Below are positions 24,238-64,000 of a stretch of 64,000 nucleotides of DNA, piece after piece (the first letter of the stretch is position 1; each line of letters begins with the position of its first letter). The translations under genes were made by a program, and so were the position numbers. The notes beneath the pieces were generated by a model, which was given only the letters and a program-made list of their open reading frames with translations, did not search any database and was not told the origin of the DNA. The DNA comes from Lytechinus pictus (Eukaryota): NCBI RefSeq assembly GCF_037042905.1, contig NC_087245.1, positions 28,334,001-28,398,000 on the forward strand. The letters run 5' to 3'.

Positions 24238-24707
24238 AACATTTTATGTATTCGAGTCTGTGTTATACTTTATACTTCATAAAAGAAAAAATGTATTATT
24301 CAAGCACTAGCTAGCATACTGAGCGAAAAGTTCTGTCCCATCCCATGACCCCCCCCCCCTTTTTTTTTAAAACATTTTATTGGCAGAAAATTGCTTTCGG
24401 AAAGAGTGGTTACCTTTCACCTCTTTATTGTTCTTGTCAGAAAATCATTGCCCCTCCGTTTAAGGTTTTCCGGGTACACGACTGCATTTAAAACCGAAAG
24501 AAAAAAGTGTACTTATATCCGCTAGATTGTAGGCCACGGTCTGTGGTGTCATCCAAAACATGGCTCTACAGGATATCCGAACCGATATCCGAAGATGACG
24601 TAATACCACCCGGTACCATGCACTCTCTAAAACAATGAGCAATAAATGTATACAAATGAAAGTTGACCAGTTCACCCTGATCATGTTTTGATATTGAAAA
24701 AAGTAAC

Positions 24708-24853
24708 CAGGAGAGCATTTCATGAAACAATAAAGACAGTGATTTCTACTTACAAGTGTTATAAGCTACTGAAAATCCTTGCATCTGATTGGCTTAGAGC
24801 AAATTTGTCCAGTGAAAAACCATTGACAACGTAACTCATGAAACGTTCCCCCG
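24708..24853. mobile_element. Old Harbinger-like MITE fixed in all five Trf promoters
   Basis: CAG-GAGAGCATTTCATGAA...TTCATGAAACG(C/T)TCCCC imperfect TIR (best preserved in copies 4 and 5); contains CTGATTGGCT. Confidence 0.55.
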
Positions 24854-24881
24854 GTAAATAACAAACTAAAATAGCAATAAA

Positions 24882-24966
24882 ATGATTCAACCAGGTAATA
24901 CCTGGAAAAGCCTGACACGGTTTGGTACGAGGGCGGTTCTCGTCAGGGAGTGAAAGTGTATAAATA
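24882..24966 (+). promoter_or_regulatory. Trf core promoter (TATAAATA at 24959; equivalent TATA boxes at 33528, 42099, 49376, 57199)
   Basis: TATAAATA ~127 nt before the ATG in all five copies, preceded by TGATTCA, the palindrome CCAGGTA-A-TACCTGG, TGGAAAAGCC, GGG(C/T)GG and GAGTGAAAGTG. Confidence 0.7.
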
Positions 24967-25085
24967 CAATGAGCTATAACAGAATTTAATCAGGTTTGGA
25001 GCTGATCCTGTCATCCTGAGAAGCTATCAATACACGGAAAGAATTCAAAATTGCGGGACTGGAGTGACACCCCCAATACGCCAAC

Positions 25086-26916
25086 ATGGAGTTGAAAGCA
25101 ACTGTGATCGTTGCTATCCTGGCTGCACTTGCTATGTCAGGTAAGCTCTCAAATTTGTATTTCGATCATCTGAAGGTATTATTACAAGATGATATTTTGA
25201 TTATCGCAATTCATTGATAGAAATCATAACTATTTCTATTTTGTTTGATAAAAGGAGGAATAACGCTTCATATCATTACCAATCACCACTGCTGTATTAA
25301 TGGGGGAGGGGGCTAGGGGCTAGCCCCCAAACCTTCCGTGACCAAGCAAAATTTTCAATACGAGAAAGAGAGATAAGGAGTGCAAAATGATTTTATTTTC
25401 TGAATGTTAAAATTTGTCACAAATTCATATTTTCATTTTAGAAGGTCAAAAGTTTCCGTCGCGATTTTAAAAAATATTTCCCCATTTTATTACGCAAGGT
25501 TTTTATGTGTCATTATTACTATTATTATTTGGGGAAGGGGGTGATTATGTCTTTGTCAAAAGTTGTAACTCGTAATTCAACAATAATCATGATTTTCAGT
25601 ATTCTGACTTTGTTGGGGGGGGGGGGTTGCTAATACAAAAGAAAATTGCCTATGTCAAATGGCTTATATCCTAAAATCTGTCAAATATTTTCAAGTTTAA
25701 TATGACTATACATGAATAGTGTCACATCGAACCAAACAAACGATGAAAATCTTATTGTTCTTATAAATTCGGACTATAAGAACTAAATCATCATAAATCT
25801 TTAATCACATAAAATATATATGAAATATCAGACAGCAAGATATAGGCCTAGGCTCATTATTGGTAAAAATTAACATTGTAAAAACTAAGACAAATATTTA
25901 ACAGAAATATCACATCGGAAATGATTCATATCATTGGAATCCTGAAAGGCTTAAGAAACTAATAGATTAATAGAAATTATTAAGTTTTCTGTACATTTTC
26001 CTCTTTTACAGCTAATGCACGAAGAGGTGATCGTGGAGGTATGGGGCCAGGGAGAGAGAGGGGAGAGGGTCGTTTCGGAGGAAGACCTGACGGAGTGCCA
26101 ATGGGAGGGCCAAGGCGAGGAGGTGGTGGAATGATGGATGGAAGGAGGTTTGATGGCCCCGGGTTGGGGCTTGGTGCCCCTCAGAGGGACCAACGAAGAC
26201 AATTTGGTGGTCCGATGGTTGGTGGAAGAAGATCTGACGGTCCTTTCCGTGGCTCCAGACCTGAAGGAGTTGGAAGACCTTTCTTCGGTCAAGACGGAAC
26301 CAGACGTGATGGTGGAGAAGAAGAAACCGCAGATGCCTCCAAAGAGTCTAAATCAATCTTTGATCGTTTTGGACTCGGTCCGCTTTTTAGAGGACAATCA
26401 CGAGATCGGGGTCGTCTTCAGGATCAAGGAGGTCAGCATAACGACAACAGCGAAGAGGATGGAGGTCATCGTCACCATCACCATCGCTACCACCCCCACC
26501 ATCATCACCACCGTCATAATCATACTGAAGGCCAACGCCCTCACAACAAGACGGGAAATTACCCACATCGTCATCACAACAAGACCGGAGACGGGGATTG
26601 GGACGGACCAAGATTCCAGATGAGGCCTTTCCGGTTCTTCAAAAACTGGCCATTTGGAAGACACAACCGAACCGAGGAAGGATCTCACGGACATGATGGC
26701 CGCCGCCATCCCTTTGGCAAGTTCCCAGGACGCTGGGGATCACATGAAAGCGAGGAAGAAGAGGAGGAGCAGCAGCAGCAGCAGGAGTCAACAACTAGGG
26801 AAAATGCAACCCCATCTTCCCCATCGGACGTGATAACACCATCCTCCCAACCGGAAGTGATTGAGATTGCAATCAATGACAATGAAATAGATACTAATGT
26901 CATCGGACAACTGTAA
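25086..26916 (+). CDS. Trf: Transformer (185/333) immune effector, gene 1, 319 aa
   Basis: Exon 1 25086-25140 (leader MELKATVIVAILAALAMS), 871-nt GT-AG intron, exon 2 26012-26916. Gly/Arg-rich region (GGRRFDGPG-like, RPFFGQ..RR.GEEET), His-rich region with HNHT/HNKT/HNRT sequons, acidic tail ending EVIEIAIN, no Cys: the two-exon Trf architecture. Confidence 0.96.
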
Positions 26917-27121
26917 ATTGTGTTTTAAAAATGACTGATACTGTAAAAATGAAGTCTTCTATATCTTTCCTCTAGTATTGACTGATAAAAATTCCTGACG
27001 ATGTTTCATCGATACTCAGGCATCCATATATTTTTTAATCACAAAGAGATAAGAAAATTGAATGAAGATACAACACGTTTCATCATGAATTTGACCTTTA
27101 TCGTTATTGAAAGACTTGTAA

Positions 27122-27127
27122 AATAAA
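27122..27127 (+). terminator. Polyadenylation signal of Trf gene 1 (conserved after all five genes)
   Basis: AATAAA ~205 nt after the stop, followed by a GT/T-rich tract. Confidence 0.6.
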
Positions 27128-27791
27128 CATGATAAATATTATACCAAACTCGTGTTTTCATATAGCATTACTTTTTCATACACTACTACATAATTCTTAA
27201 ATAATTACTGAAAGAGAAAAGGAGAGAATGTGATATTATGGGTTGAGATATTTTAGATTTATAAATAGAGGGGGGGGGGTGGGTGGGGAAAAATAGACTC
27301 CAAATAATTATTGGAATGAGCATGGTGAAAGAAAATAGGGGAGATAGATGCATGGGAAACTATTATGTGTGTGAAGTGCTACAGACAGAAGCTTGAAAGG
27401 AGAAAGAGGGACGAGCCAGAGAAGCCTAAAGAACTGAAGAGAGGGAGTGCGATATTAATAAATAGACACATGAGAGATTGGGAGTAGAAAGATCATGAAG
27501 ATATATAGAGAGGAAAAGTGATGAATATATTAAAGAGTGAGAGAGAGATGGAAGGGGAAAGGATGGGGTTGTTACTATAGTAATATAATGAGGTAAATTG
27601 TTACAGTATCTACCCCCATCCCCATCGTCCCAATGCTCAAGTGATCGGATCGACGGACATATATTCCATTAAAACACATCTTAAAAACATGCTCATCCCC
27701 CCTCATCCTGATTATTGTTGTTAGCAACGCCTCCATCATTTCCCTCCTCAATAAATCCCTTAGCCCCTGCTTGAGTTTAGGTTATCTTTAA

Positions 27792-27997
27792 AGGGGAATC
27801 ATCACTATGACATCCCATATGTGGCCAATTTAAAGTCTCCATGAGTATAGATTATATATGATTATCAATATTTACAACTTTTAAAAATTCATAACTTTCT
27901 TGTTGTTTGTCCAATATTGTTCAAACTTTCACATATCAACTGGTCTAATTTATCTTTTTCTTATAAAAACAAGTTTTTAATTGGGTTGGATTCCCCT
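27792..27997. mobile_element. Internally deleted family-A TTAA MITE (copy at 36364-36569)
   Basis: TTAA|AGGGGAATC plus ~200 bp matching the reverse complement of 17388-17577; absent after genes 3 and 5. Confidence 0.85.
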
Positions 27998-28274
27998 TTC
28001 AGTTATTTTCCTTATTGTTTTACATTTTGTTAGTTTTTCTTTTTGGTCCCCCTATTGCTTTTAATCATATTTTTTAAATTATCATATTGTATTTTGTTGC
28101 TTTCACCAATATTGTATGTTTTTATGATTTAATTCATATGATTTTGTGCTTTTGTCATTACCATGTTTGATTGTGTATTGTACTTTTTATTTTGTGTGTT
28201 TATGGACCCCTACGAAAAACAGCATTTGCTGATAGAGTGTTCCATCCCACTAGTGGAAAATGAATATATAAATA

Positions 28275-31200
28275 TTGAATTGAATTTATTAGCAAATATC
28301 ACTGTCAGGTACAATAATTTTACAAGGAATAATACATCACATATAAACAAAACATTTGGTAATTGGAGCTAACATAAAAGCAAGATGCTAATCGAGGTTA
28401 GCCCCAAATAATGTCATTATCATAGTTTAAACAGTAAATCTAACTTAATCTCAATATTGTACATCAAATTCAGTACCAATTCTACTTATTATACTGTTGC
28501 AGAAAATTTCGATCATTTTCAGTTAACATATTTACACAATTTACAAGAAAAAAATATCTTAATTATTCACAAAAATCTTTATATAGAAATATTTGTTTTC
28601 AGGCAGTATTTTACCATACCAAATTAATTATAATCTTCCAGTAGCATTAATTTTAACGATTTGCTAAATATCTTACGACTGGGGGTGTTTCTAATATTAC
28701 TTGGCAGATTGATTGTCAATTTGTTGGCATTGCACCATGCTGTTATTGTTTAAATTGAGACGAATTTCTGATAAATCAATATGTTGTTCATCACAATTGA
28801 AAGTATGAAATAAATTTGAGTCATCTGCAAAAAGACGTAAATTGAAATAATTTGATGAGTTTGCCAGATCGTTTATATACAACAAGAACAAAATTGGACC
28901 CAAAACTGATCCTTGTGGAATACCGCATGAAATCGACCTGTATTCGGAATTTACACCATCATAATTAACAAATTGCTTTCTGTTTCGTAAATAATCATTA
29001 AACCATTCTACTGCCTTACCACGAATGCCATAGTGTTCTAGTTTCTTAATGAGAATAGAATGATTAATCGTATCAAAAGCTTTAGCAAAATCGATGAATA
29101 TTCCTACTGTCACCTTTCCTTCATCAGTATATCTTGTAATTTGATTAATCAGATTTATCAGTGAAAGTTTCGTACTGTATCCATTTCTAAAACCATATTG
29201 GTGTTTATACAATATTTCATTCTTTTCTATGAATTTCATCAATCGTGCATTCACTAGTTTTTCAAATATTTTGCTAATCGCGGGTAAAATCGATATTGGT
29301 CTATAATTTTCAGGTAATTTTTTATCTCCCTTTTTGAAAACTGGTATAACTCTTGCAACTTTTAATTTATCTGGAAAAATGCATTTGGTAAATGATAGAT
29401 TGAATATATGCGAAAGAGGTTTGCAAATACAATTCATAGCATATATCAATAGTCGAACTGATATGTCACCATAGCCACTTGCTTTAGATTGATCAAGAGT
29501 GTATAACATTTCTTTAACTTCTGAACTTGTTTATTGGCAGGAAGAAAAATGTTTGACTAATGTATGGACCCATGAACTCTCGGTAATTAACATTTGGCTC
29601 CTCAATTTTCTCAGCTAGATTTTTCCCAATAGTAGAGAAATAATTGTTGAGGAATTCAGATTCGAGCCGCTATTTTTATTCAAAAGTTCATTGATATGAC
29701 TCCAAGTTTTCTTTGAATCTTTTTTGTCTGCTTTAAACTTATGTTCATAATGCATTTGCTTTGCTTCTTTAAGACGGTTGTTAACTGATTTCTGTATTTA
29801 TTATATTTATTCAAACAATCTTTATTATAATTTGATTTTATAACTTGAAAAAAAAGTTTGTGCTTTGTCGATATTGAACGCTTAATACATCGTGTTATCC
29901 AAGGTTTATTTTTCTTTTTCTGTTTAAGACATTTTGTCTCAATAGGAGCATGTTTATTACAAACAAATAAGATCTGTCTTTGGAAAATATTATAAGCTTC
30001 ATTAGGATCCATACATTCTAAAACGCTTTTCCTAAAATCAGTAGTAACATGTAGATCATTACAAAATGAATCTATTGAAAAATTATAAAATTTTCTCCGT
30101 GTTACACTATTTTTTCTTTGTTTAACACACTTGAAGTTCTTAAAAACGGAGTAAACTGGGAGATGGTCAGAAATATCTACTTCAATACACCCTGCTTGAA
30201 TAGGATAGGCATATATATTTGTATAGAAATGGTCAATGAGAGATATGCTAGAACTTGTTATTCTTGTTGGACTTGTCATCAACTGACGTAAGCCATAACA
30301 TTCTGTCATGTGAATAAACTCACAACTTTCAGTTGGAGATAAAAGATTTATATTGAAATCTCCTACAATATTGCAATGGTTTCTGTCTAGATTCAAGTTA
30401 TGCAATTGCTCGTTGAGATCAAGACTAAATTCTTCAAAGTTACTGTTTGGTTTTCTATAAATTACCCCGAATATGATACTCGCATCCTGAATGAGAATTT
30501 TCAGCCATAATGATTCAGCATTGTGCAAGGACAAATTAGGCATTCGTTTGTAATTAAGTCCTGAATGAATATAAGCACCAACTCCTCCTCCTCTTGTAAT
30601 ATTTCTACATTATAATTCAAGATTATACCATGGCATTGAAAACTGATTTATGTCTTTAACATTCCAAACTTCTGATAATGCGAATATCAAAAAATGATTT
30701 AAATTCATCTTCATATACTTCTTTCAGCATTTCAAAATTGCGATTCAAAGATCTCACATTCACGTGCGAAATGAAGAATGACTGAGGAAAAGCTTTTGTC
30801 GAGGAAAATTTTTCAGTAGAAAGTGATGCTGTTGTTATTTGAAATGGATCAAGTTCTTCGTTATCATTAAGCGAAATTATGTTGATAAGATTAAATTGGT
30901 GGTGGTATTGGTGGTGATTTTTTTACCTGATTGCTAAGAAAGCATGAATGCTTGTAAGCAAGCAACCAGAGGACCGACGGCGGTCCTCTCCGAAGGACCT
31001 GGTACTGAGGATTAATGCCTTACCAAAGGGCACTAGCGCACCAAGTGGGAATCGAACCCGGGTCACCGGAATACGAGTCCCCCGCTCTACCGACTGAGCT
31101 ATCGCGCCTCCTATGTAGTATCCATTACGTTCATAAGCATTACGTAAAAGATAAAATAAAGACATTACATATTTACAGTTATTTCAGCTTCGAAATATCT

Positions 31201-31389
31201 TCTTTCGAGAGTATGATGACAGGAGCTCATTTCTCGTCATTCCTGACATATATATTTTCCATTGTAAGTCCATAAGAACTTGTACCCAGCATTTTTTCTA
31301 GCTCCATTGGCGAGTCCTAGCAGCTCTCTTGTTGCACCGACGAGGTTCTCGTTGACAAAGGTTGATTCCAAGATCCGCAGAAGTTTATT
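28275..31389 (-). mobile_element. 5'-truncated, decayed CR1/L2-group LINE (ORF1 C-terminus, APE endonuclease, RT)
   Basis: RT motifs YRPISILP, FIDFAKAFD, PQGSVLGP, LFADD (28697-29509). APE motifs GDFNIN, IDH, SDH (29680-30543). ORF1-like tail FVNENL...YKFLWTYNGK (~31250-31360). 3' end AATAAATTCAATTCAA. 10-bp TSD TATATAAATA (28265-28274/31390-31399). Empty site after genes 3, 4 and 5. Confidence 0.92.
30924..31111 (-). mobile_element. tRNA-derived SINE lying between LINE ORF1 and ORF2 (copy at 39496-39683)
   Basis: GGAGGCGCGATAGCTCAGTCGGTAGAGC (A box)...GGTTCGATTCCC (B box), then a non-tRNA body and an A-rich end. Confidence 0.8.
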
Positions 31390-32398
31390 TATATAAATAA
31401 ACAAATAAAAAATAAATGATATGAATGTAACTTACATCTGGTAAATATCTCGAGGTGAGGTGAGTCATTGGCCGGTCTGCTTGGAGTTTGCCACGATGTT
31501 GTCGGAAAGAGTCCGCTCCCAGTACATGCCCGCCAGAAATTACATAGATTGCAGCTTTCTCCTATAGGCCTATGTAGGGAAGTGTCTGGCGTATTTAATA
31601 CCTTTTGGAAATAGATCACCCAGAGTGGAACAAGATTTATAATCAGCATAGGGAATGTCAATGGTAATTGTACACAGTCTTGGCAGTTGGCTGAAGACTT
31701 TCTCGCTGGAACACTGAGTTGCATGGGTTTACACGTACTCCCCCAATACGTCTTTAATCAATCCAGGCATTCCCACTGATGCTTTTCACAAAGCAGTCTG
31801 GACTCTGGGGTGAGCAATTATAATCATTCCCCATGGAAGCTTACATCCATTTGACTTTAACTGATTTCTCTCCTTTCATCTTTAAACCCTTCTGAATACA
31901 ATCTCATTAAAATTCTCTGAGCTACTCTACTACTCTCATATATACAAATTCCAATTAAAATTACTTCTTTTATTCTACTCCCGAACCCTCTTTACAAATT
32001 AATTTTCCAAACTGAACATCATGCACAGCTATAGGCTACATTTTCAATCACATACAAAACAAACAGTATTAAGTACCCTACAAAGATCTGAAGTTCATTA
32101 ACTTGGTTACCAGCAAAACTGAAATTCTTTTCTTTAATGCTAGCATTAACTCTCCCATTCAATCTTAACTAAGCCAGTCAACTTAACCCTATATACATTA
32201 TAAAAATATTGTGTAAAATTGCTCCATGAGGGTAATCATGTGTCCAACCAACATTGGGAATTTCTTTTGGGCATTTTTATCTATTCAGTGTGATGACTGA
32301 AAATTTTGCCCATTCTAAATAACCATACTGGCTTCCCACATTGAGTAAAATACTGCCCCACATTGATTGGGCACATATTATTTGTAATGCCCGGGCAC

Positions 32399-32629
32399 CA
32401 TAGCCCTGGGAAGCGGGGGTGCTGGGAGTGCTGAAGCACCTCAAAAATTTCCTTGGGGATGCTGCGTGTACTATTTTCCATAGGCAGCACCCCCAGGTAT
32501 TCTGAAAGATGTGTAAAATTGGGAAAACAGGTAACCAAAAAGACCTTCATTTTTTTATTGAAACCCCCTTATTTTTGCTTTTAAAATTTACATCAGCACC
32601 CCCAGTCAAGAATCGTTCCCAGGGCCCTG
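32399..32629. mobile_element. Small hAT-type MITE present in the array spacers (also ~40971, ~53583, ~61596)
   Basis: CA..GCCC...GGGCCCTG ends; 8-bp TSD CCGGGCAC. Confidence 0.7.
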
Positions 32630-33654
32630 CCGGGCACGCGGCTACGAAATAACGCAGCATTATGTAAGTACATGTCAGACCAAAAATAAAAACGTAATAT
32701 GTACAAAGTCAATACAAAATCTCTTTCATCTAAAATTCACAAATGAGTGAAAATTCTCACTTGATTGTCGATAGCATTTAATATTATACTATTTATGACT
32801 GAATAATGTCACCGATGATATTTGTCCCAAAAAAAAACAATTAAAGATTTAAAAAACAAAGAAATGAATGAGAAAAATAATTTCATTAGCGTAATTTTTG
32901 GCTTGTAGTTGATAAGAATGCCACAAAGAATATTTTCACCAAAAATTAGCTTTCTATAGGAGTGAATTAGAGCAAAAAGTATGATGAATAAATAATTCAT
33001 ATAAAAAGAAATATATGATAATTTATTTCCGTACATGCAGTGGTGTAGATTAAGTCATCCTCTACCTTCGTGCACTTTTCGTCGTGATCGCTCGATCCGC
33101 GGCCGAGATCTTAAAGGGGGGGGGGGGGCTCTACAGGATATCCGATCCGATATCCGAAGATGACGTAAAACCACCCGGTACCAGGCACTCTCTAAAACAA
33201 TGAGCAATACATTTATGCAAATGAAAGTTGACCAGTTCACCCTGATCATGGTTCGATATTGAAAAGAGTAACCAGGAGAGCATTTCAAGAAACAATAAAG
33301 TCAGTGATTTCCATTGACAAGTGTTATAAGCTACTGAAAATCCTTGCATCTGATTGGCTTAGAGCAAATTTGTCCAGTGAAAAACCATTGACACGATGCC
33401 TTCATGAAACGTTCCCCCGCTAAATAACAACAAACTAAAATAGCAATAAAATGATTCAACCAGGTAATACCTGGAAAAGCCTGACACGGTTTGGTACGAG
33501 GGTGGTTCTCGTCAGGGAGTGAAAGTGTATAAATACAGTGAGCTATAACAGAATTTAATCAGGTTTGGAGCTGATCCTGTCATCCTGAGAAGCTATCAAT
33601 ACACGGAAAGAATTCAAAATTGCGGGACTGGAGTGACACCCCCAATACGCCAAC

Positions 33655-35488
33655 ATGGAGTTGAAAGCAACTGTGATCCTTGCTATCCTGGCTGCACTTG
33701 CTATGTCAGGTAAGCCTTCAAATTTGTATTTCGATCATCTGAAGGTATTATTACAAGATGATATTTTGATTATCGCAATTCATTGATAGAAATCATAACT
33801 ATTTCTATTTTGTTTGATAAAAGGAGGAATAACGCTTCATATCATTATCAATCACCACTGCTGTATTAATGGGGGAGGGGGCTAGGGGCTAGCCCCCAAA
33901 CCTTCCGTGACCAAGCAAAATTTTCAATACGAGAAAGAGAGATAAGTAGTGCAAAATGATTTTATTTTCTGAATGTTAAAATTTGTCACAAATTCATATT
34001 TTCATTTTAGAAGGTCAAAAGTTTCCGTCGCGATTTTAAAAAATATTTCCCCATTTTATTACGCAAGGTTTTTATGTGTCTTTATTACTATTATTATTTG
34101 GGGAAGGGGGTGATTATGTCTTTGTCAAAAGTTGTAACTCGTAATTCAACAATAATCATGATTTTCAGTATTCTGACTTTGTTGGGGGGGGGGGGGGGTT
34201 GCTAATACAAAAGAAAATTGCCTATGTCAAATGGCTTATATCCTAAAATCTGTCAAATATTTTCAAGTTTAATATGACTATACATGAATAGTGTCACATC
34301 GAACCAAACAAACGATGAAAATCTTATTGTTCTTATAAATTCGGACTATAAGAACTAAATCATCATAAATCTTTAATCACATAAAATATATATGAAATAT
34401 CAGACAGCAAGATATAGGCCTAGGCTCATTATTGGTAAAAATTAACATTGTAAAAACTAAGACAAATATTTAACAGAAATATCACATCGGAAATGATTCA
34501 TATCATTGGAATCCTGAAAGGCTTAAGAAACTAATAGATTAATAGAAATTATTAAGTTTTCTGTACATTTTCCTCTTTTACAGCTAATGCACGAAGAGGT
34601 GATCGTGGAGGTATGGGGCCAGGGAGAGAGAGGGGAGAGGGTCGTTTCGGAGGAAGACCTGACGGAGTGCCAATGGGAGGGCCAAGGCGAGGAGGTGGTG
34701 GAATGATGGATGGAAGGAGGTTTGATGGCCCCGGGTTGGGGCTTGGTGCCCCTCAGAGGGACCAACGAAGACAATTTGGTGGTCCGATGGTTGGTGGAAG
34801 AAGATCTGACGGTCCTTTCCGTGGCTCCAGACCTGAAGGAGTTGGAAGACCTTTCTTCGGTCAAGACGGAACCAGACGTGATGGTGGAGAAGAAGAAACC
34901 GCAGATGCCTCCAAAGAGTCTAAATCAATCTTTGATCGTTTTGGACTCGGTCCGCTTTTTAGAGGACAATCACGAGATCGGGGTCGTCTTCAGGATCAAG
35001 GAGGTCAGCATAACGACAACAGCGAAGAGGATGGAGGTCATCGTCACCATCACCATCGCTACCACCCCCACCATCATCACCACCGTCATAATCATACTGA
35101 AGGCCAACGCCCTCACAACAAGACGGGAAATTACCCACATCGTCATCACAACAAGACCGGAGACGGGGATTGGGACGGACCAAGATTCCAGATGAGGCCT
35201 TTCCGGTTCTTCAAAAACTGGCCATTTGGAAGACACAACCGAACCGAGGAAGGATCTCACGGACATGATGGCCGCCGCCATCCCTTTGGCAAGTTCCCAG
35301 GACGCTGGGGATCACATGAAAGCGAGGAAGAAGAGGAGGAGCAGCAGCAGCAGCAGGAGTCAACAACTAGGGAAAATGCAACCCCATCTTCCCCATCGGA
35401 CGTGATAACACCATCCTCCCAACCGGAAGTGATTGAGATTGCAATCAATGACAATGAAATAGATACTAATGTCATCGGACAACTGTAA
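33655..35488 (+). CDS. Trf: Transformer gene 2, 319 aa
   Basis: Exon 1 33655-33709 (MELKATVILAILAALAMS), 874-nt intron, exon 2 34584-35488 with the same protein as gene 1. Confidence 0.95.
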
Positions 35489-48860: not shown

Positions 48861-48904
48861 TTGAGGCCTTTCATCTTTAGTTAGGAATACCTCCCCTCTT
48901 CGAA

Positions 48905-48940
<36 letters not shown>

Positions 48941-52130: not shown

Positions 52131-52305
52131 AGAGATGGCCCACCTAATGAATATTCATGACGACTGTTTTCACAAAATATTGATAAACTTTAAAATTAAA
52201 TAACTTTGTTATTTTTTTCCGATTTTTAAGAAATCTTCAGCATTTTGCTGAGTGAATTCTACTCTATTTATTAAGCTATAAATATTTTCAGCCTGGACCA
52301 CCCCT
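52131..52305. mobile_element. Internally deleted family-B TTAA MITE
   Basis: TTAA|AGAGATGG joined to the right arm of the element seen at 62257-63426. Confidence 0.85.
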
Positions 52306-54353
52306 TTAAGTTATTTTCCTTATTGGTTTACATTTTGTTGATTTTTCTTTTTTAGTCCCCCTATTGCTTTTAATCAAATTTTGTTTTTATTATCATATTG
52401 TATTTTGTTACTTTCACCAATATTGTATGTTTTTATTATTTAATTGATATGATTTTGTGCTTTTGTCATTATCATGTTTGATTGTATATTGTACTTTTTA
52501 TTTTTTGTGTGTATGGACCCCTACGAAAAACAGAATTTGCTGATAGAGTGTTCCATCCCACTAGTGGAAAATAAATATATACATAATACATAAAAAATGA
52601 ATGATATGAATGTAACTTACATCTGGTACATATCTCGAGGTGAGGTGAGTCATTGGCCGGTCTGCTTGGAGTTTGCCACGATTTTGTCGGAAAGAGTCCG
52701 CTCCCAGTACATGCCCGCCAAAAATTACATAGATTGCAGCTTTCTCCTATTATAGGCCTATGTAGCGAAGTGTCTGGCGTATCTAACATATTTTGGAAAT
52801 AGATCACCCAGAGTGGAACAAGATTTATGATCAGCATAGGGAATGCCAATGGTAATTGTACACAGTCTTGACAGTTGGCTGAAGACTTTCTCGCTGGAAC
52901 ACTGAGTTGCATGGGTTTACACGTACTCACCCAATACGTCTTTAATCAATCCAGGCATTCCCACTGATGCTTTTCACAAAGTAGTCTGGACTCTGGGGTG
53001 AGCAATTATAATCATTCCCCATGGAAGCTTACATCCATTTGACTTTAACTGATTTCTCTCCTTTCATCTTTAAACCCTTCTGAATACAATCTCATTAAAA
53101 TTCTCTGAGCTACTCTACTACTCTCATATATACAAAATTCCCATTAAAATTACTTCTTTTATTCTACTCCCGAACCCTCTTTACAAATTAATTTCCCAAA
53201 CTGAACATCATCCACAGCTATAGGCTAAATTTTCAATCACATACAAAAAAAGTATTAATACCCTACAAAGATCTGAAGTTCATTAACTTGGTTACCAGCA
53301 AAACCGAAATTCTTTTCTTGAATGCTAGCATTGACTCTCCAATTCAATCTTAACTAAGCCAGTCAACTTAACCCTACATACACTCTAAAAATATTGAGTA
53401 AAATTGCTCCATGAGGGTAATTATGTGTCCAACCAACATTGGGCATTTCTTTTGGGCATTTCTATTTATTCAGTGTGATGACTGAAAATGTTGCCCATTC
53501 TAAATAACCATACTGGCTTCCCACATTGAGTAAAATACTGCCTTACATCGATTGGGCACATATTATTTGTGATGCCCGGGCACCATGGCCCTGCGAAGCG
53601 GGGGGGGGGGGGGGGGGTCGGGGAGTGCTGAAGCACCCCAAAAATATAGTTGGGGATTCTGCGTGTACAATTTTCCATAGGCAGCACCCCCAGGTATTCT
53701 GAAAGATGTGTAAAATTGGGAAAAAGGTAACCAAGAAGACCTTCATTTTGTAGTGAAACCCCCTTATTTTTGCTTTTCAAATTTACATCAGCACCCCTGT
53801 CAAAAATCGTTCCCAGGGCCCTGCCGGGCACGCGGTTACGTAATAACGCAACATTATGTAAGTACATGTCAGACCAAAAATAAAAACTTAATATTTACAA
53901 AGTCAATACAAAATCTCTTTCATCTAAAATTCACAAATGAGTGAACATTCTCACTTGATTGTCAATAGTCATTTAAAATGATACTATTTATGACTTGAAT
54001 AATGTCACGGATGATATTTGTCGAAAAAAAAACAATAAAAGATTGAAAAAACAAAGAAATAAATATGAAAAATAATTTCATTAGCGTAATTTTTGGCTTG
54101 TAGTTGTGAGGAATGCCACAAAGAATATTTTCACAAAAAATTAGCTTTCTAGGAGTGAGTTAGAGCAAAGAGTATGATTAATAAATAATTCATATAAAAA
54201 GAAATATATGATAATTTATTTACGTATATGCAGTGGTGTAGATTATGTCATCCTCTACCTTCGTGCTGTTTTCGTCGTGATCGCTCGATCCGCGGCGCCG
54301 AGATCTTAAGGGGGGCTCTACAGGATATCCGAAGTTGACGTAATACCACCCGA

Positions 54354-56849
54354 CATGGGCGGAAATCCCAGGGGGGACAGGGGAAGCGCCCCCCTTCCAT
54401 TTTGGAAAGGGGGGGGGGACATAATATCAAATGTCCCCCCTACTATTTGTGGTCTTTTATTATAGAAAAAATAAATAATTCAAAATCGAAGTTATACACA
54501 TGTATCCTCGAATTTCGAAATATATATAAACAAATAGTTTTTGTTTTAAGAACTTGGTTAGGAAAAGAAAAGGCATACCGGCCCGATAATTCTCGAACTC
54601 GCATCTAGCCCTATATGCCAGCCAAAGAGTAATGACATTAATGACATCGATGGCCATTGTCAATTTCATAACTAATAAAAATGAAAATCGCCCCTGGATA
54701 CTTATAAGTAAATTTAGTGCATAGATAGTAGACGAGAATGTTCCATACCCCGTAAAAACATACCCTTGTTAAACCAATTCATTATCCCTTTATTCCAAAT
54801 TTACTTGGAATATATTTTCATAGTTCGCGTACTCAGTAAAAAGAATAGTTTTCATGAGTTATGATTAATCCTTCGCAGTGAATTTTGACTATGTTTAATC
54901 CCCCAAATTTTTTTTAGATACTCTATTAACGAGACTTTTATATTCCATTTTATACAAAATTCTTGCCGTGGGAGGGGTCATCATAGGTAGATCAAGGGGG
55001 CGAAGCGGCGGCCCACCCCCTATTGGCGGCGCAAAATAGGAAAGTGAGGAGAAAATTAAGAAAGATATGACGAGGAAGAAAATCAAATGATGGAAGGGGA
55101 GGGGAATAATTAAAAAAAAAAAAGAATTTCAGGTCATAGTATAAAAATACAAAAATTCGCTCTCGCTTTGGCATAATACACAGCCATCTCTTTATTTCAA
55201 AACGTGCTTAATTTTTTTTTACTTTTTAGATCGAAATATATAAACTCAAATTATTTATTTAGGAAGATATCCGTCTTTTCATAATTTGTAGGTTTAAATC
55301 TTTAAAAAAGCTCACGCTTTGCGCTCGCATTGCTTATTAGGATAAACTGCTTGTTCTTTATTTCAAAAGTGCTTGAAAGATCCAGTTTTCAGATCTGAAT
55401 ATAAAAAAATTATTTCGCGCTTCGCGCTCGCATCAGTAATATGGTTGAGTCAGATACTATCCTGTTTATTGCTATAAGGTAAAAGAAGATGACTTTTTTG
55501 GTCGGAAAAAAATAATATAGGATACGCTTCGCGCTCACATTAATTAAAATTTAGTTAGATAGCTACCATGTCCTTGATTTTAAAGTATGCTAATAATACA
55601 AATTTTTAGGCCAGAAATGACATATCTTCAGCACACACTTCGCGCTCGAATCTGATATTTTCTAGTTAAATTCCTATCCTGTTCATGATTTGAAAATCTG
55701 TTACGATTGTCCAGTTTTTAGGTTGGAAAATACAAACTTAGGCTCGCGCTTCGCGCCCGCATTAATTGTTTAGATTCCTATCTTGTTCATAATATAAAAA
55801 AAATACTAAGAATGTCCAGTATTTAGGTTGGGAAATCAAAAACTTTCACCCCTTGCTTCGCGGTCGCATTGTTTAGATTCCTATCCTGTTCATAATTTTT
55901 TTTTAAGTACTAAGAATGTCTAGTTTTTAGGTTGGAAAATCAAAAACTTTCAGCTCGCGCTTCGCGCTCGCATTAATTGATTAGTTCCTATCCTGTTCAT
56001 ATTATTTTTAAGATGCTATGAATGTCCAGTTTTTAGGTTGGAAAATAAAAAACCTTCAGCTCGCGCTGGCATTCATTCTTTAGATTCATATTCCGTTCAT
56101 TATTAAGTGCTAAGAATATCCAGTTTTTAGATTGGAAAATTAAAAACTTTCAGCTCGCGCTTCCCGCTCGCATTAATTGTTTAGATTCATATCCTGTTCA
56201 TATTCTTTTTAAAGTGCTATGAATGTCCAGTTTTTAGGTTGGAAAATCAAAAACTTTCAGCTCGCGCTCGCATTCATTCTTTACATTCATATTCCGTTCA
56301 TTATTAAGTGCTAAGAATGTCCAGTTTTTAGGTTGGAAAATCAAAAACTTTCAGCTCGCGCTTCCCGCTCGCATTAATTGTTTAGATTCATATTCTTTTT
56401 AAAATGCTATGAATGTCCAGTATTTAGGTTGGAAAATCAAAAATTTTCAGCTCGCGCTCGCGTCTATTGTTTAGTTAAATTCCTATCCTGTTCAGGATTT
56501 GAAAAAGTGTTACGAATGTCTAGTTTGGAAATCAAATACTTTCAGCTCGCGCTTGCATTAATGGTTTAGGTAGGTTCGAATCTAGTTCATGGTCACAAAT
56601 AATGTTCAGAATGTTCAATTTTCAGGTCACAATTTATGAAATATCAACATATTAGGGCTCGCGCTTCGCGCTCGCATTATTTATTGAGGCCTTTCATATT
56701 TAGTTAGGAATACCTACCCTCTTCGAAATATATATATAAATATATATATATGTATGTGTGTGTTTGTTTGAGTTAGTAATTCTGTAGAACATAAAAACGG
56801 AAAACTCAATTGTGTCCCACCTACCTTCAAGGAGAGATTTCCGCTCATG
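54354..56849. mobile_element. Non-autonomous hAT-type element upstream of Trf gene 5
   Basis: TIR CATGGGCGGAAATC...GATTTCCGCTCATG; 8-bp TSD CCACCCGA/CCACTCGG of a site that is single (CCACCCGG) before genes 1-3. Confidence 0.85.
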
Positions 56850-57327
56850 CCACTCGGTACCATGCACTCTCTTAAACAATAAGCAATAAATTTATGCAAA
56901 TGAAAGTTGACCAGGTCTGATCATGGTTTGATATTGAAAAGAGCAACCAGGTGAGCATTTCATGAAACAATAAAGTCAGTGATTTCCACTGACAAGTGTT
57001 ATAAGCTACTGAAATCCTTGCATCTGATTGGCTTAGAGCAAATTTGTCAAGGGAAAAACCATTGACAACGTACCTTCATGAAACGTTCCCCCGGTAAATA
57101 ACAAACTAAAAAAGCAATAAAATGATTCAACCAGGTAATACCTGGAAAAGCCGGTCACGGTTTGGTACGAGGGCGGTTCTCGTCAGGGAGTGAAAGTGTA
57201 TAAATACAGTGAGCTATAACATAATTTAATCAGGTTTGGAGCTGATCTTGTCATCCTGATAAGCTATCAATTTACACGGAAAGAATTCAAACTTGCGGGA
57301 CTGGAGTGATACCCCCAATACGTCAAC

Positions 57328-59097
57328 ATGGAGTTGAAAGCAACTGTGATCCTTGCTATCCTGGCTACACTTGCTGTGTCAGGTAAGCCTTCATATTTGT
57401 ATTTCAATCATCTGAAGGTATTATTACAAGATAATATTTTGATTTTCGCAATTCATTGATAGAAATCATAACTATTTCTATTTTGTTTGTTAAAGGAGGA
57501 ATAACACTTTATATCATTATCAATCACCACTGCTGTATTAATGGGGCACCTAAACGTTCCGTGACCATGCAAAATTTTCAATACGAGAAAGAAAGAAAAG
57601 GAGTGCAATATGATTTTATTTTCTAAATGTAAAAATCTGTAACAAATTCAAATTTTCATTTTAGAAGGTCAAAATTTTCCCTCGCGATTTTCAAAAATAA
57701 TTCCCCATACGCAAGGTTTTTATGTGTCATTATTATCATTATTATTTTGGGAAGGGGGTGATTATGTCTTTGTCAAAAGTTGTAACTTGTAATTCAACAA
57801 TAATCATGATTTTCAGTATTCTGATTTTGTTGGGGGCGTTGCTAATACAAAAGAAAATTGCCTATGTCAAATGGTTTATATCCTAAAATCTGTCAAATAT
57901 CTTCAAGTTTAATATGACTATACATGAATAGTGTCACATCGAACCAAACAAACGATGAAAATCTTATTGTTCTTATAAATTCGGACTATAAGAACTAAAT
58001 CATCATAAATCTTTAATTACATAAAATCTATATGAAATATCAGACATAGCAAGATATAGTTCTAGGCTACTTATTGGTAAAATGAACATTGTAAAAAAAT
58101 ATATATTTAACAGAAACATTCTTACAACAGTGTCACATCGGAAATAGTTCATATCATTGGAATCCTGAAAGGCTTAAGAAACTAATAAATTAATAGAAAT
58201 TATTAAGTTTTCTGTACATTTTCCTCTTTTACAGCCAATGCACGAAGAGATGATCGTGGAGGTATGGGGACTGGGAGAGAGAGGGGAGAGGGTCGTTTCG
58301 GAGGAAGGCCTGACGGAGTGCCAATGGGCGGGCCAAGGCGAGGAGATGGTGGAGTGATGGATGGAAGGAGGTTTGATGGCCCCAGGTTGGGGCTTGGTGC
58401 CCCTCAGATGGACCAACGAAGACAATTTGGTGGTCCGATGGGTGGTGGAAGAAGATCTGACGGTCCTTTCCGTGGCTCCAGACCTGAAGGAGTTGGAAGA
58501 CCTTTCTTCGGTCAAGACGGAACCAGACGTGATGGTGGAGAAGAAGAAACCGCAGATGCCTCCAAAGAGTCCAAATCAATCTTTGATCGTTTTGGACTGG
58601 CTCCGATTTCTAGAGGACAATCACGAGGTCGGGGTCGTCTTCAGGATCAAGGAGAAGGTCAGCATAACGACAGCAGCGAAGAGGATGGAGGTCATCGTCA
58701 CCATCGCTACCACCCCCACCATCATCACCACCGTCATAATCATACTGAAGGCCACCGCCCTCACAACAAGACGGGAGATTACCCACATCGTCATCACAAC
58801 AAGACCGGAGACGGGGATTGGGACAGACCAAGATTTCAGATGAGGCCTTTCCGGTTCTTCAAAAACTTGCCATTTGGAAGACACAACCGATCCGAGGAAG
58901 GATCTCACGGACATGATGGCCGCCACCATCCCTTTGGCAACCGAGGACGCTGGGGATCACATGAAAGCGAGGAGGAAGAGGAGCAGCAGCAGCAGGAGTC
59001 AACAACTAGGGAAAATGCAACCCCATCTTCCCCATCAGAAGTGATAACACCATCCTCCCAACCGGAAGTGATTGAGATTGCAATCAATGACAATTAA
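57328..59097 (+). CDS. Trf: Transformer gene 5, 305 aa
   Basis: Exon 1 57328-57382 (MELKATVILAILATLAVS), 852-nt intron, exon 2 58235-59097; earlier TAA. Confidence 0.95.
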
Positions 59098-60683
59098 ATA
59101 GATACTAATGTCACCGGACAACTGTAAATTGTGTTTTAAAAATGACTAATACTGTAAAAATGAAGTCTTCCATATCTTTCCTCTAGTATTGACTGATAAC
59201 CTGACGATGTTTCATCGATTCTCAGGTATCTATATATTTTTTAATCATAAACAGACAAGAAAATTGAATGGAGATACAAAACGTTTCATCATGAAATTGA
59301 CCTTTATCATTATTGAAAGACTTGTAAAATAAACATGATAAATATCATACCAAACTCATGTTCTTTCATAGCATGTTTACTATTTCATACACTTCTAGAT
59401 ATTTTTTAAATAATTACTGAAAGAGAAAAGGAGAGAATGTGATATTATGGGTTGAGATATTTTAGATTTATATAGAGAGGGGGGGGGGGGTGGGTGGGGA
59501 AAAGGAGACTCCAAATAATTATTCGAGTGAGCATGGTGAAAGAAAATAGGGGAGAGAGATGCATGGGGAAACTATTATGTGTGTGAAGTGCTACAGACAG
59601 AAGCTTGAAAGGAGAAAGAGGGACGAGCCAGAAAAGCCTAGAGAACTGAAGAGAGAGAGTGCGATATCAATAAATAGACACATGAGAGATTGGGAGTAGA
59701 AAGATCATGAAGATATATAGAGAGGAAGAGTGATGGATATATTGAAGAGTGAGAGAGAGATGGAAGGGGAAAGGATGGGGTTGTTACTATAGCAATATAA
59801 TGAGGTAAATTGTTACAGTATCTACCCCCATCCCCATCGTCCCAATGCTCAAGTGATCGGATCGACGGCCATATATTCCTTTAAAACACATCTTAAAAAC
59901 ATGGTCATCCCCCCTCATCCTGATTATTGATGTTAGCAACGCCTCCATCATTTCCCTCCTCAATCAATCCCTTAGCCCCTGCTTGAGTTTAGGTTATCTT
60001 TAAGTTATTTTCCTTATTGTTTTACATTTTGTTAGTTTTTTTTTAAATCCCCCTATTGCTTTTAATCATACTTTGTTTTTATTATCATATTGTATTTTGT
60101 TGATTTCACCAATATTGTATGTTTTTATGATTTGATTCATATGATTTTGTGCTTTTGTCATTACCATGTTTGATTGTGTATTGTACTTTTTATTTTGTGT
60201 GTTTATGGACCCCTACGAAAAACAGCATTTGCTGATAGAGTGTTCCATCCCACTCGTGGAAAATAAATATATAAATAAATACATAAAAAATAAATGATAT
60301 GAATGTAACTTACATCTGGTACATATCTCGAGGTGGGGTGAGTCATTGGCCGGTCTGCTTGGAGTTTGCCACGATGTTGTCGGAAAGAGTCCGCTCCCAG
60401 TACATGCCCGCCAGAATTACATAGATTGCAGCTTTCTCCTATATATAGGCCTATGTAGGGATGTGTCTGGCGTATTTAACACCTTTTGGAAATAGATCAC
60501 CCAGAGTGGAACAAGATTTATAATCAGCATATAGGGAATGTCAATGGTAATTGTACACAGGCTTGACAGTTGGCTGAAGACTTTCTCGCTGGAACACTGA
60601 GTTGCATGGGTTTACACGTACTCACCCAATACGTCTTTAATTATTCCAGGCATTCCCACTGATGCTTTTCACAAAGTAGTCTG

Positions 60684-60994
60684 GGGCCGATTGCACGAAA
60701 GGGTCTTTCCAAGGACCGTCTTTCGTGTCGCCCATCTTTTATGATGCGCTATAAGCGGGGTGTTTCTGAAATTTATGATAAACAAATAAAATTCGTAAGC
60801 TTGCTTTTAAATCAAATTTTATACAATTTCATGAGATATCACATCATTTTATAAACAAATATTTTGTTTATTTTAACGGACAAATAAAATATATTTGCAG
60901 ATAATTTATTTGAAATGCGTTTTACATGGCGTATCATAAAAGATGGGCGACACGAAAGACGGTCCTTGGAAAGACCCTTTCGTGCAATCGGCCC
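60684..60994. mobile_element. Young PIF/Harbinger-like MITE
   Basis: ~60-bp perfect TIR starting GGGCCGATTGCACGAAAGGG; 3-bp TSD CTG; empty site in the other spacers. Confidence 0.9.
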
Positions 60995-61818
60995 CTGGAC
61001 TCTGGGGTGAGCAATTATAATCATTCCCCATGGAAGCTTACATCCATTTGACTTTAACTTATTTCTCTCATTTCATCTTTAAACCCTTCTGAATACAATC
61101 TCATTAAAATTCTCTGAGCTACTCCACTACTCTCATATATACAAAATTCCCATTAAAATTACTTCTTTTATTCTACTCCCGAACCCTCTTTACAAATTAA
61201 TTTCCCAAACTGAACATCATCCACAGCTATAGGCTACATTATCAATCACATACAAAACAAACAGTATTAAGTACCCTACAAAGATCTGAAGTTTATTAAC
61301 TTGGTTACCAGCAAAACCGAAATTCTTTTCTTAAATGCTAATATTAACTCTCCCATCCAATCTTAACTAAGCCAGTCAACTTAACCCTATATACACTTTA
61401 AAAGTATTGTGTAAAATTGCTCCATGAGGGTGATTATGTGTCAAACCAACATTGGGTATTTCTTTTGGGCATTTTTATCTATTCAGTGTGATGACTGAAA
61501 ATTTTGCCCATTCTAAATAACCATACTGGCTTCCCACATTGAGTAAAATACTGCCCCACATTGATTGGGCACATATTATTTGTGATGCCCGGGCACCAAG
61601 TCCCTGGGAAGCGGGGGTGGGGGTCGGGGAGTGCTGAAGCACCCCAAAAATATAGTTGGGGATTCTGCGTGTACTATTTTCCATAGGCAGCACCCCCAGG
61701 TATTCTGAAAGATGTGTAAAATTGGGAAAAAGGGTAACCAAAAAGACCTTCATTTTGTAGTGAAACCCCCTTATTTTTGCTTTTCAAATTAACATCAGCA
61801 CCCCCAGTCAAAAATCGT

Positions 61819-64000
61819 ACACTACTAGATAATTTTTACATAATTACTGAAAGAGAAAAGGAGAGAATGTGATATTATGGGTTGAGATATTTGAAGAGAG
61901 AGAGAGAGAGTGCGATATCAATAAATAGACACATGAGAGATTGGGAGTAGAAAGATCATTAATATAATTATATAGAGAGGAAGAGTGATGAATATATTAA
62001 AGAGTGAGAAAGAGATGGAAGGGGAAGGATGGGGTTGTTACTATAGCAATATAATGAGGTAAATTGTTACAGTATCTACCCCCGTCCCCATCGTCTCAAT
62101 GCTCAAGTGATTGGATCGACGGACATATATTCCTTAAAAACACATCTTAAAAACATGCTCATATCCCTCATCCTGATTATTGTTGTTAGCAACGCCTCCA
62201 TCATTTTTCTCCTCAATCAATCCCTTAGCCCCTGCTTGAGTTTAGGTTATCTTTAAAGAGATGGTCCAGGCTGAAAATATTTATATCTTAAAGGAGAATG
62301 AAACTCTTGGAGCAAGTTAGCTTTTGTGAAAGCAGAAAAATCAAAGAATAAGATCAACAAAAGTTTGAGTAAAATAGGACTAGCAATAGAAGAGTTATGA
62401 GCATTTGAATATCGAGATCACTAATGCTATGGAGATCCTCCAATTGGCAACGCAACCGAGATCTATGATATCACAGATGAACAACTCTCCCCTTTTGGAC
62501 ACTGAAAATATACCCCAAAACATCTCTTTTTGCTCTTTCTAATCATATGACAAACGATTCATCAATGATATAATGTTGTGAAATCTCTGTACTTGTCCTC
62601 TCATAAAGAGAACACCTCACCTTGTGATAGATTCTATAAAAGTGAGAATATAAGTGAAATAAGTACTAAAGCAATGAGGGAGTTGTACGTGTGTGACGTC
62701 ACAGATCTTGGTCGCGTTGCCAATGGGAGGATCTACATGGCATTAGTGATCTCAATATTCAAATACTCATATCTTTCTTATTATTCATTCAATCTTCCTC
62801 AAACTTTCAATGATATGTTTCTTTGATTTTTCTCTTTGATATGGATTCAGCTGGTTTCAAGGGTTTCATTCTCCTTTAATAACTAGTGTAGAATTCACTG
62901 AGCAAAATGCCGAAAATTCCATCATAATCGGATAACAAATAATAAAGTTATTGAAGTTTAAAGTTTAGCAATATTTTGTGAAAACAGTCGTCATGAATAT
63001 TCATTAGGAGGGCTGATGATGTCACACCTCCACTTTCCGTTTTCTTATGTTATTACATAAGATCTTATTTTTTTCATTATTTCATACTTGTGTGAATTAT
63101 ATGTCTCCCTTATAATGAAATAAGTTGCAGCAATAAATATATAATGCACTAAATCAGTTGTCAATCCAATTTTTCTAGTTCTTGGAGGAAAAAAACTGAA
63201 TAAACCTAATTTCATATAATAAAATACAAAAGAACAAGTGGGGATGCGACATCAACAGCCCACTTAATGAATATTCATGACGACTGTTTTCACAAAATAT
63301 TGCTAAACTTTAAAATTAAATAACTTTGTTATTTTTTTCCCGATTTTAAAGAAATTTTCAGCATTTTGCTGAGTGAATTCTACTCTATTTATTAAGCTAT
63401 AAATATTTTCAGCCTGGACCATCCCTTTAAGTTATTTTCCTTATTGGTTTACATTTTGTTGAATTTTCTTTTTTAGTCCCCCTATTGCTTTTAATCATAT
63501 TTTGTTTTTATTATCATATTGTATTTTGTTACTTTCACCAATATTGTACGTTTTTATGATTTAATTCATATGATTTTGTGCTTTTGTCATTACCATGTTT
63601 GATTGTGTATCAGCATTTGCTGATAGAGTGTTCCATCCCACTAGTGGAAAATAAATATATAAATAAATAGATAAAAATAAATGATATGAATGTAACTTAC
63701 ATCAAGTACATATCTCGAGGTGAGGTGAGTCATTGGCCGGTCTGCTTGGAGTTTGCCACGATGTTGTCGGAAAGAGTCCGCTCCCAGTACATGCCCGCCA
63801 GAAATTACATAGATTGCAGCTTTCTCCTCTAGGCCTATGTAGGGAAGTGTCTGGCGTATTTAATACCTTTTGGAAATAGATCACCCAGAGTGGAACAAGA
63901 TTTATAATCAGCATAGGGAATGTCAATGGTAATTGTACACAGTCTTGGCAGTTGGCTGAAAACTTTCTCGCTGGAACACTGAGTTGCATGGGTTTACACA
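61819..64000 (+). repeat. Sixth array unit: Trf 3' flank and spacer with no Trf gene
   Basis: Spacer sequence ...aaaatcgt joins directly to acactactagataatttttacataatt, which elsewhere lies just downstream of the Trf polyA region. Confidence 0.85.
62257..63426. mobile_element. TTAA MITE family B with nested TTAA MITE family C (62292-62875)
   Basis: Outer: TTAA|AGAGATGGTCCAGGCTGAAAATAT...ATATTTTCAGCCTGGACCATCCCT|TTAA. Inner: TTAA|AGGAGAATGAAAC...GTTTCATTCTCCT|TTAA. Confidence 0.88.

Follow-up and report, generated by a model that had tools for sequence, protein, structure and literature searches.

An expressed Transformer (185/333) gene array in Lytechinus pictus with a legible rearrangement history

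The Transformer genes (Trf, formerly 185/333) of euechinoid sea urchins are among the foremost cases of extreme diversification in the innate immunity of an invertebrate. Their hallmarks are rapid up-regulation on immune challenge, expression in phagocytes, and products that bind lipopolysaccharide, beta-glucan, flagellin and phosphatidic acid with a change from disorder to helix. The genomics of the family rests almost wholly on Strongylocentrotus purpuratus, in which dozens of genes, microsatellite islands and allelic mismatch hamper both assembly and knock-out. The stretch of Lytechinus pictus DNA analysed here (64,000 nucleotides, hereafter the window; positions 28,334,001 to 28,398,000 of contig NC_087245.1, assembly GCF_037042905.1) very probably contains the Trf locus of this species, an array with a history of duplication, deletion, conversion and insertion of transposable elements (TEs). 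The array is a genuine and expressed one, its architecture departs from the S. purpuratus model, and its rearrangement history is unusually legible. A literature search found no description of L. pictus Trf, and the cluster appears to be undescribed.

Every Trf gene of S. purpuratus has GA repeats at its flanks, and GAT repeats mark the bounds of the duplications; the repeats are regarded as drivers of the duplication and deletion of the genes (PMC5491942; PMC8634487). The L. pictus array is not built in this way. Its longest GA run has 7 copies and no GAT run reaches 5 copies, so that neither gene-flanking GA nor duplication-bounding GAT repeats are present, and yet duplication, deletion and conversion have occurred. 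The units measure 7.3-8.6 kb, compared with a gene spacing down to ~3 kb in S. purpuratus, and all genes share one orientation. Six genes at a single locus were found, of which three share an identical exon 2; S. purpuratus, in contrast, has 15 genes of high diversity at two loci. Protein identity between the two species is only ~40-55%, and the central RGD of S. purpuratus is RDG in every L. pictus copy.

The remaining characters agree with the S. purpuratus genes. In both species, exon 1 of a two-exon gene encodes the leader and exon 2 the mature protein, and the Gly-rich, His-rich and C-terminal regions are collinear in a Cys-free protein that is disordered (as predicted in L. pictus). In both, too, the genes are tightly clustered and have undergone segmental duplication, deletion and conversion (PMC5491942, PMC8634487), the six L. 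pictus genes lying within ~46 kb. In-frame block indels alter the element make-up of the proteins in the two species; in L. pictus, these indels measure 66, 6 and 3 nt.

For the genus Lytechinus, the literature searched holds only a single L. variegatus gene and nothing for L. pictus. That gene, LvTrf, was reported with 2.5-kb flanks from the L. variegatus genome for use as an outgroup, with no array structure described (PMC8634487). Compared by its published description only, it belongs to the same genus and is presumably orthologous to the L. pictus locus. The HeTrf genes of Heliocidaris erythrogramma and the PlTrf genes of Paracentrotus lividus are known from amplicons and cDNAs, unlike the contiguous locus of L. 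pictus. They resemble the L. pictus genes in the leader, in the Gly-rich and His-rich regions and in the element indels. The central RGD between the Gly-rich and His-rich regions is reported to be absent from both (PMC8268236); hence, a central RGD does not define the family. In contrast to these genes, L. pictus has RGD tripeptides at aa 23 or aa 54, at a level expected by chance (~40% of shuffles).

Family identity, products and transcripts

The array encodes proteins of the Trf (185/333) family, as established by full-length homology, gene structure and composition. The exon 2 product matches 185/333 proteins of S. purpuratus (E 2e-48 to 8e-32), S. intermedius (E 2e-37) and H. erythrogramma (E 3e-23 and 2e-18) over 80-100% of the query, and the alignment is collinear through the leader, the Gly-rich region, the His-rich region and the C-terminus. 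A first reading of the bare sequence (the sequence-only reading) had assigned the genes to Trf, proposed a BLAST comparison as its check and placed the locus probably outside the well-studied S. purpuratus cluster. The similarity found, from E 2e-48 to 2e-18, supports the family assignment. The species assignment is supported as well, as the spliced gene 5 product is identical to an NCBI L. pictus protein (P0001). This protein, also the best match to gene 1 (89% identity), is named "PP1 regulatory subunit 10-like". The gene 5 product belongs to the Trf family, so that its public name is in error, and the annotation is corrected here to Trf. The identical genes 1-3 were not seen among the database proteins.

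In each gene, a hydrophobic leader (MELKATVI..) is encoded by a 55-nt exon 1 and the whole mature protein by an exon 2 of 800-905 nt; the intron between them measures 852-874 nt and has GT..AG ends. This two-exon plan is that of the Trf family, and the splice is backed by RNA contigs. The distinction of two subgroups in the sequence-only reading stands. The products of genes 1-3 are identical, save one leader residue in gene 1, and are marked by an RGD at aa 23 and the long tail EIDTNVIGQL; their exon 2 sequences do not differ. Genes 4 and 5 are marked by RDD, an extra Glu (QGEGQ) and a TAA where genes 1-3 have GAA, and the former tail is still readable past this early stop. Gene 4 has a 66-nt in-frame deletion and no RGD; gene 5 has a 6-nt in-frame deletion and an RGD at aa 54.

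All five products in the window lack Cys and contain 16-18% Gly, 12-13% Arg and 7-8.5% His. They are predicted to be disordered: AlphaFold2, run on a shallow alignment of 12 sequences, gave a mean predicted local distance difference test (pLDDT) score of 43.5, with 261 of 300 residues below 50 and no secondary structure called. This low score agrees with the intrinsic disorder of rSpTrf-E1 (PMC5491942). By homology with S. purpuratus, these secreted, Cys-free, Gly/Arg/His-rich proteins would be effectors derived from phagocytes, with an expected role in antimicrobial binding and opsonisation. Pfam contains no Trf model, and no Pfam family was found on the products.

The RGD tripeptides were considered as evidence for integrin binding. 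This was rejected, as ~40% of residue shuffles contain RGD; the RGDs at aa 23 (genes 1-3) and aa 54 (gene 5) fit chance (P about 0.4), and the motif was kept as a subgroup marker only. The site homologous to the central RGD of S. purpuratus reads RRDGGEEE in all copies. An open reading frame (ORF) of 160-206 aa in the +1 frame overlaps exon 2 in all five genes (26138-26623 and equivalents) and was also rejected as a second coding frame: its length lies within the expectation from codon shuffles (P 0.19-0.37), and it has no Pfam match. No site of the NF-kB consensus GGGRNWYYCC lies in the array; the whole window has 4, where about 6 are expected. Two spacer ORFs, 52472-52930(-) and 53466-53867(-), matched no family.

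RNA from two studies shows transcription of both gene types, with splicing that follows the gene models. In RNA run X1, contigs cover 25004-25144, 26009-26586 and 26618-27000 at a word depth of 1600-2660, with 1, 0 and 0 differing letters, respectively. Depth in the intron is 2-4, and the loose contig ends cross the exon junction in both directions. From the X1 contig that begins at 25004, transcription of gene 1 probably starts near 24990-25004. In run X5, from another study, one contig passes directly from 25137 to 26009, leaving out 871 nt bounded by GT..AG, and bears group-2 letters (26085 A>G, 26186 G>T and 26219 T>G). A second X5 contig has a 3-nt insertion at 26429. The gene is also present, at low depth, in X9, a poly-A RNA run labelled as marine metagenome.

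Some further RNA signals concern alleles or repeats. In an X5 contig spanning 24884-26348, a group-2 exon 2 occurs together with a 5' untranslated region letter of the unit 2/3 type (24934 T); either the contig is chimeric, or it represents an allele absent from the assembly. The X5 letter 26374 C>T fits none of the six genes and points to other alleles in other animals. In the deep run X21, high depth at 24687-24811 and 27812-28061 was considered as gene expression and attributed instead to dispersed repeats. A short dispersed repeat, itself containing an inverted repeat, occupies 24687-24811 and the equivalent segment of every unit, ~300-400 bp before each ATG. It has a very high RNA depth originating elsewhere in the genome, and most of its reads continue into unlike sequence.

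Units of the array and their rearrangements

A direct-repeat search and self-BLAST reveal a head-to-tail tandem array on the + strand from 24562 to the window end at 64000 (Table 1). The sequence-only reading had described an abrupt cassette start at ~24562, five same-strand two-exon genes spaced by 7.3-8.6 kb and a spacer still running at 64000. All of this is accurate. Unique sequence meets GGCTCTACAGG at 24562. The five intact genes, all in the same orientation and with GT..AG introns, have starts separated by 8569, 8571, 7281 and 7821 bp (gene 1 to gene 5), and the last spacer reaches extended coordinate 65408. The extension to the right that the same reading had called for added a sixth, frameshifted gene and a second ghost. 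In total, the array overruns the window by ~6.95 kb, and its homology stops at extended coordinate ~70951 (the next 10 kb were examined). The window contains no N. No second Trf locus was found by protein and DNA searches of the 812-Mb assembly, the genome-wide searches giving lower bounds.

Table 1. Position of the array, its units, genes and inserted elements (extended coordinates continue the window numbering past 64000; LINE, long interspersed nuclear element; MITE, miniature inverted-repeat transposable element; TIR, terminal inverted repeat; TSD, target-site duplication)
Feature	Position	Strand	Remarks
Trf tandem array	24562-64000, on to extended ~70951	+	repeat search, self-BLAST
Unit 1	24562-33126 (8565 bp)	+	5' flank, gene 1, 3' flank with MITE-A, LINE, spacer
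Unit 2	33127-41697	+	chimeric unit
Unit 3	41698-45280	+	without MITE-A and LINE
Unit 4	49027-54315	+	
Unit 5	56850-61817	+	
Ghost unit 1	61818-64000, spacer to extended 65408	+	3' flank and spacer only
Ghost unit 2	extended 70150-70951		88-93% identical, older; array homology ends after it
Gene 1	exon 1 25086-25140, exon 2 26012-26916	+	319 aa
Gene 2	exon 1 33655-33709, exon 2 34584-35488	+	319 aa
Gene 3	exon 1 42226-42280, exon 2 43153-44057	+	319 aa
Gene 4	exon 1 49507-49561, exon 2 50420-51219	+	284 aa
Gene 5	exon 1 57328-57382, exon 2 58235-59097	+	305 aa
TATAAATA box	24959-24966	+	upstream of gene 1
MITE-A	27792-27997		at TTAA site; units 1 and 2 only; second copy 36364-36569
LINE	28275-31389	-	degenerate; RVT_1 (E 6e-31) and endonuclease ORFs; units 1 and 2 only
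LINE, second copy	36847-39961	-	no differences from the unit 1 copy
Truncated hAT-type copy	45281-49026		5'-truncated; upstream of gene 4; ~100-bp tandem repeats 48033-48746
Nested hAT-type element	45449-46960 (1512 bp)		33-nt imperfect TIR, 8-bp TSD CATCTAGC
MITE-B	52131-52305		unit 4, same TTAA site as MITE-A; common to ghost 1
hAT-type element	54354-56849 (2496 bp)		full-length, non-autonomous; ~475 bp upstream of gene 5 ATG
MITE with 70-nt TIRs	60684-60995		unit 5 spacer; TIRs 97% complementary
MITE-B copy in ghost 1	62257-63426		nested MITEs inside; TTAA-flanked

Every internal junction has the same form: the spacer is followed by a poly-G run and then by GCTCTACAGG. The same motif stands at the left edge, where it follows unique sequence. 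Units 1 and 2 are 99.58% identical over 8.6 kb, and unit 3 matches at 98.2% over its first 3.2 kb. For units 4 (from ~49027) and 5 (from ~56850), the match is 92-96%. Non-coding divergence among units 4, 5, 6 and ghost 1 is 3-6%.

Deletions are recorded in the array. At the scar 61817/61818 of ghost 1, spacer (equivalent to 32616) is joined directly to 3' flank (equivalent to ~27170); ~3.1 kb are lost, comprising the distal spacer, the promoter and both exons. The remaining 3' flank with MITE-B is nearest to that of unit 4 (96.7%). At the boundary of units 3 and 4, the unit 3 spacer is cut at the equivalent of 31473 by a deletion of ~1.8 kb, which reaches into the hAT-type element and took the left end of this copy together with the distal spacer of unit 3.

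Unit 6 follows the ghost 1 spacer, to the right of the window, and its gene is group-1-like. It reads GAGAGAGAGA where the other genes read GAGAGAGA: a coding GA run is expanded by 2 nt at extended 66865-66874 (contig 28400865-28400874), and translation stops after 59 aa. Downstream, the frame is otherwise open to the long tail. Either gene 6 is truly a pseudogene, or the expansion is an assembly error in low-complexity sequence.

Conversion has taken place between unit 6 and units 1-3. Within a tract of ~0.7 kb (25806-26535), unit 6 groups with units 1-3 at 22 sites and with units 4-5 at 1 site; outside the tract, the counts are 17 and 32 (Fisher's test, 5e-7). None of 300 permutations of the labels yields so strong a contrast. 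The 3' flanks group differently from the genes, unit 5 with unit 6 and unit 4 with ghost 1. The array is therefore a mosaic.

The TE insertions distinguish the units further. The LINE is missing from units 3, 4 and 5, where its empty site is seen. The 2496-bp element carries a 14-nt TIR (CATGrGCGGAAATC), a TSD (CCACCCGA/CCACTCGG) and tandem repeats at 55666-56614, and its 8-bp target CCACCCGG is intact as an empty site in units 1, 2, 3 and 6. It has no ORF of at least 120 aa and is non-autonomous. An 8-bp TSD and short TIRs are the features of hAT elements, and it is by these two alone that the element is classed as hAT-type. The truncated copy upstream of gene 4 shares its right end (49026) and its flank with the element of gene 5. 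Both hAT-type elements, the 2496-bp and the nested one, belong to families dispersed genome-wide, with many full-length copies at 88-96% identity. A copy related to MITE-A lies outside the array at 17377-17577.

Two unrelated MITE families occupy the same TTAA site in different units (27788-27791, 52127-52130 and 62253-62256). This suggests an insertion hot spot and warns against a homoplasy-free reading of TE presence or absence. TTAA elements can also excise precisely. The TEs are thus imperfect markers and, because the 3' flanks group unlike the genes, they give only a partial order of events.

With this restriction, a history of the locus can be proposed. The array would be built of ancestral units of ~5.2 kb (5' flank, two-exon gene, 3' flank and spacer, in same-orientation tandem), among which the group-1 type (genes 1-3 and 6) split long ago from the group-2 type, now represented by genes 4 and 5. 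A hAT-type element would have inserted upstream of the group-2 ancestor, prior to its duplication. One gene was removed by the ~3.1-kb deletion now seen as ghost 1, and the ~1.8-kb deletion reshaped the unit 3/unit 4 boundary. The ~0.7-kb conversion tract links unit 6 with units 1-3, and slippage of +2 in the GA run may have frameshifted gene 6. The LINE and MITE-A would have inserted behind unit 1, followed by a very recent unequal crossover between units 1 and 3 that produced unit 2.

Much of this had been anticipated in the sequence-only reading. The ghost unit that it named has its scar at 61817/61818, with promoter and gene missing; the deletion that it claimed is seen both there and in the truncated unit 3/unit 4 junction; and conversion is documented by the tract linking unit 6 to units 1-3. 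The hAT insertion that it saw as common to genes 4 and 5 corresponds to 54354-56849, with its 8-bp TSD and 14-nt TIR, and to the truncated copy ending at 49026. The claim that duplication, chimera formation, conversion and deletion can all be ordered by TE insertions is supported with reservations: each process has left its trace, but the markers are imperfect, the same TTAA having been used twice and the flanks being mosaic.

Outside the array, the left side is occupied by a multi-exon gene of hyalin repeat (HYR) domains at 644-16287 (-). Its exon-sized ORFs (644-940, 5897-6226, 11030-11296, 12599-13012 and 15674-16024) each match PF02494 (E 2e-5 to 1e-14). In the stretch to the right of the window (L008, in which 2865-2874 corresponds to extended 66865-66874), a Tc1/mariner-type DDE_3 transposase ORF (E 1e-14) lies at 7948-8634 and a tandem duplication of ~361 bp, 97.7% identical, at 9200-10000.

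Unit 2 and the number of copies

Unit 2 is an exact chimera of the 5' part of unit 3 and the 3' part of unit 1. Between units 1 and 2, there are 35 differing positions, all within 24581-25614; thereafter, only homopolymer lengths vary, unit 2 being identical to unit 1 from 34187 onward. With unit 3, on the other hand, unit 2 shows 0 differences over 33127-35531 and 29 over 35532-36325. The shared block of 1.35 kb corresponds to the 3' intron and exon 2. Chimera formation, also claimed in the sequence-only reading, has its trace in these breakpoints. In the proposed mechanism, unit 3 of one chromatid would have paired with unit 1 of the other, with the crossover inside the shared block. The arrangement resembles the Lepore-type chimeras of globin arrays, which arise by unequal crossing-over. 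As in those, unit 2 lies between its parental units A and B as a B5'/A3' chimera, and the exchange point falls in a stretch that is identical in both parents. Unlike in those, the duplication is kept in cis with both parents, and it lies in an array of immune effectors.

It may be proposed, tentatively, that L. pictus has its entire Trf family in one array of ~46 kb, which comprises six genes, lacks flanking microsatellites and is still duplicating, deleting and converting, and in which unit 2 is only thousands of generations old and segregating. Several observations weigh against the identification and history of the locus set out above. Over the 3' 7.5 kb of units 1 and 2, the lone substitution, at 32828, is a homopolymer shift (CCC-A9 vs CC-A10), and the remaining differences are poly-G lengths. 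Some copy inflation by haplotype mixing may be present, given the divergence of 3-6% between the other units. Run X21, a deep raw-read RNA run of which 6% was read, has practically no reads on the gene. Finally, pairwise ratios of nonsynonymous to synonymous substitution (dN/dS) of 0.59-0.83 do not support clear positive selection.

The chief alternative accepts a real Trf array but takes unit 2, and with it the third identical gene, for an over-expansion by the assembler, a graph cycle traversed twice. The cycle would consist of the 1.35-kb core, the 3' flank, LINE and spacer of unit 1 and the 5' flank of unit 3. The pattern of unit 2 matches this explanation as well as it matches a crossover, and for this youngest event, the ordering claimed in the sequence-only reading is not secured. 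No trustworthy difference separates units 1 and 2 over 7.5 kb, and units 2 and 3 are identical over their first 2.4 kb. A period of 8.6 kb, however, is normally resolved by long-read assemblers, and unit 2 has the pattern of a textbook product of unequal crossing-over. Moreover, the Trf gene number of S. purpuratus varies between alleles (PMC5491942), which makes a very young duplication plausible. Over-expansion is, on balance, rather unlikely, and the step that led to unit 2 needs confirmation by long reads.

Part of the array could also be two haplotypes of a shorter array stitched in tandem, with units 4 and 5, or ghost 1 and unit 4, as alleles. A non-coding divergence of 3-6% among units 4, 5, 6 and ghost 1 resembles the heterozygosity of sea urchins and lies in the range of their allelic divergence. 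Such merging is an artefact of which the Trf literature warns (PMC5491942). Yet every junction falls at the same homologous point (spacer, poly-G and GCTCTACAGG) and not at arbitrary contig ends, and the unique flanks are single-copy. The TE and deletion state of each unit is distinct and continuous with its neighbours, as in the unit 3 spacer joined inside the hAT-type element. RNA from other studies, in addition, holds both group-1 and group-2 transcripts. Haplotype merging is improbable as the origin of these units.

Long-tract gene conversion (concerted evolution) among three old units is highly improbable as the cause of the near-identity of units 1-3: conversion does occur in the array, as the unit 6 tract attests, and exon 2 of genes 1-3 is identical, but the identical block of units 1 and 2 extends over 7.5 kb with a 3.1-kb LINE and MITE-A at the same sites and in the same flanks, and a single crossover accounts for both breakpoints where conversion requires two very long tracts with complementary ends.

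Consequences for the Trf family

Compact, confined to one locus, free of microsatellites and found in a laboratory urchin, the L. pictus array provides an outgroup locus whose rearrangements are each legible to the single base. It allows the dependence of Trf instability on microsatellites to be tested, and it is a realistic target for deletion of the whole family. If the proposal of a single, six-gene, still-changing array is true, the instability of Trf loci would be independent of the GA and GAT repeats invoked for S. purpuratus. One deletion could then remove the whole family in the genetically tractable L. pictus, and the role of Trf in vivo would become directly testable.

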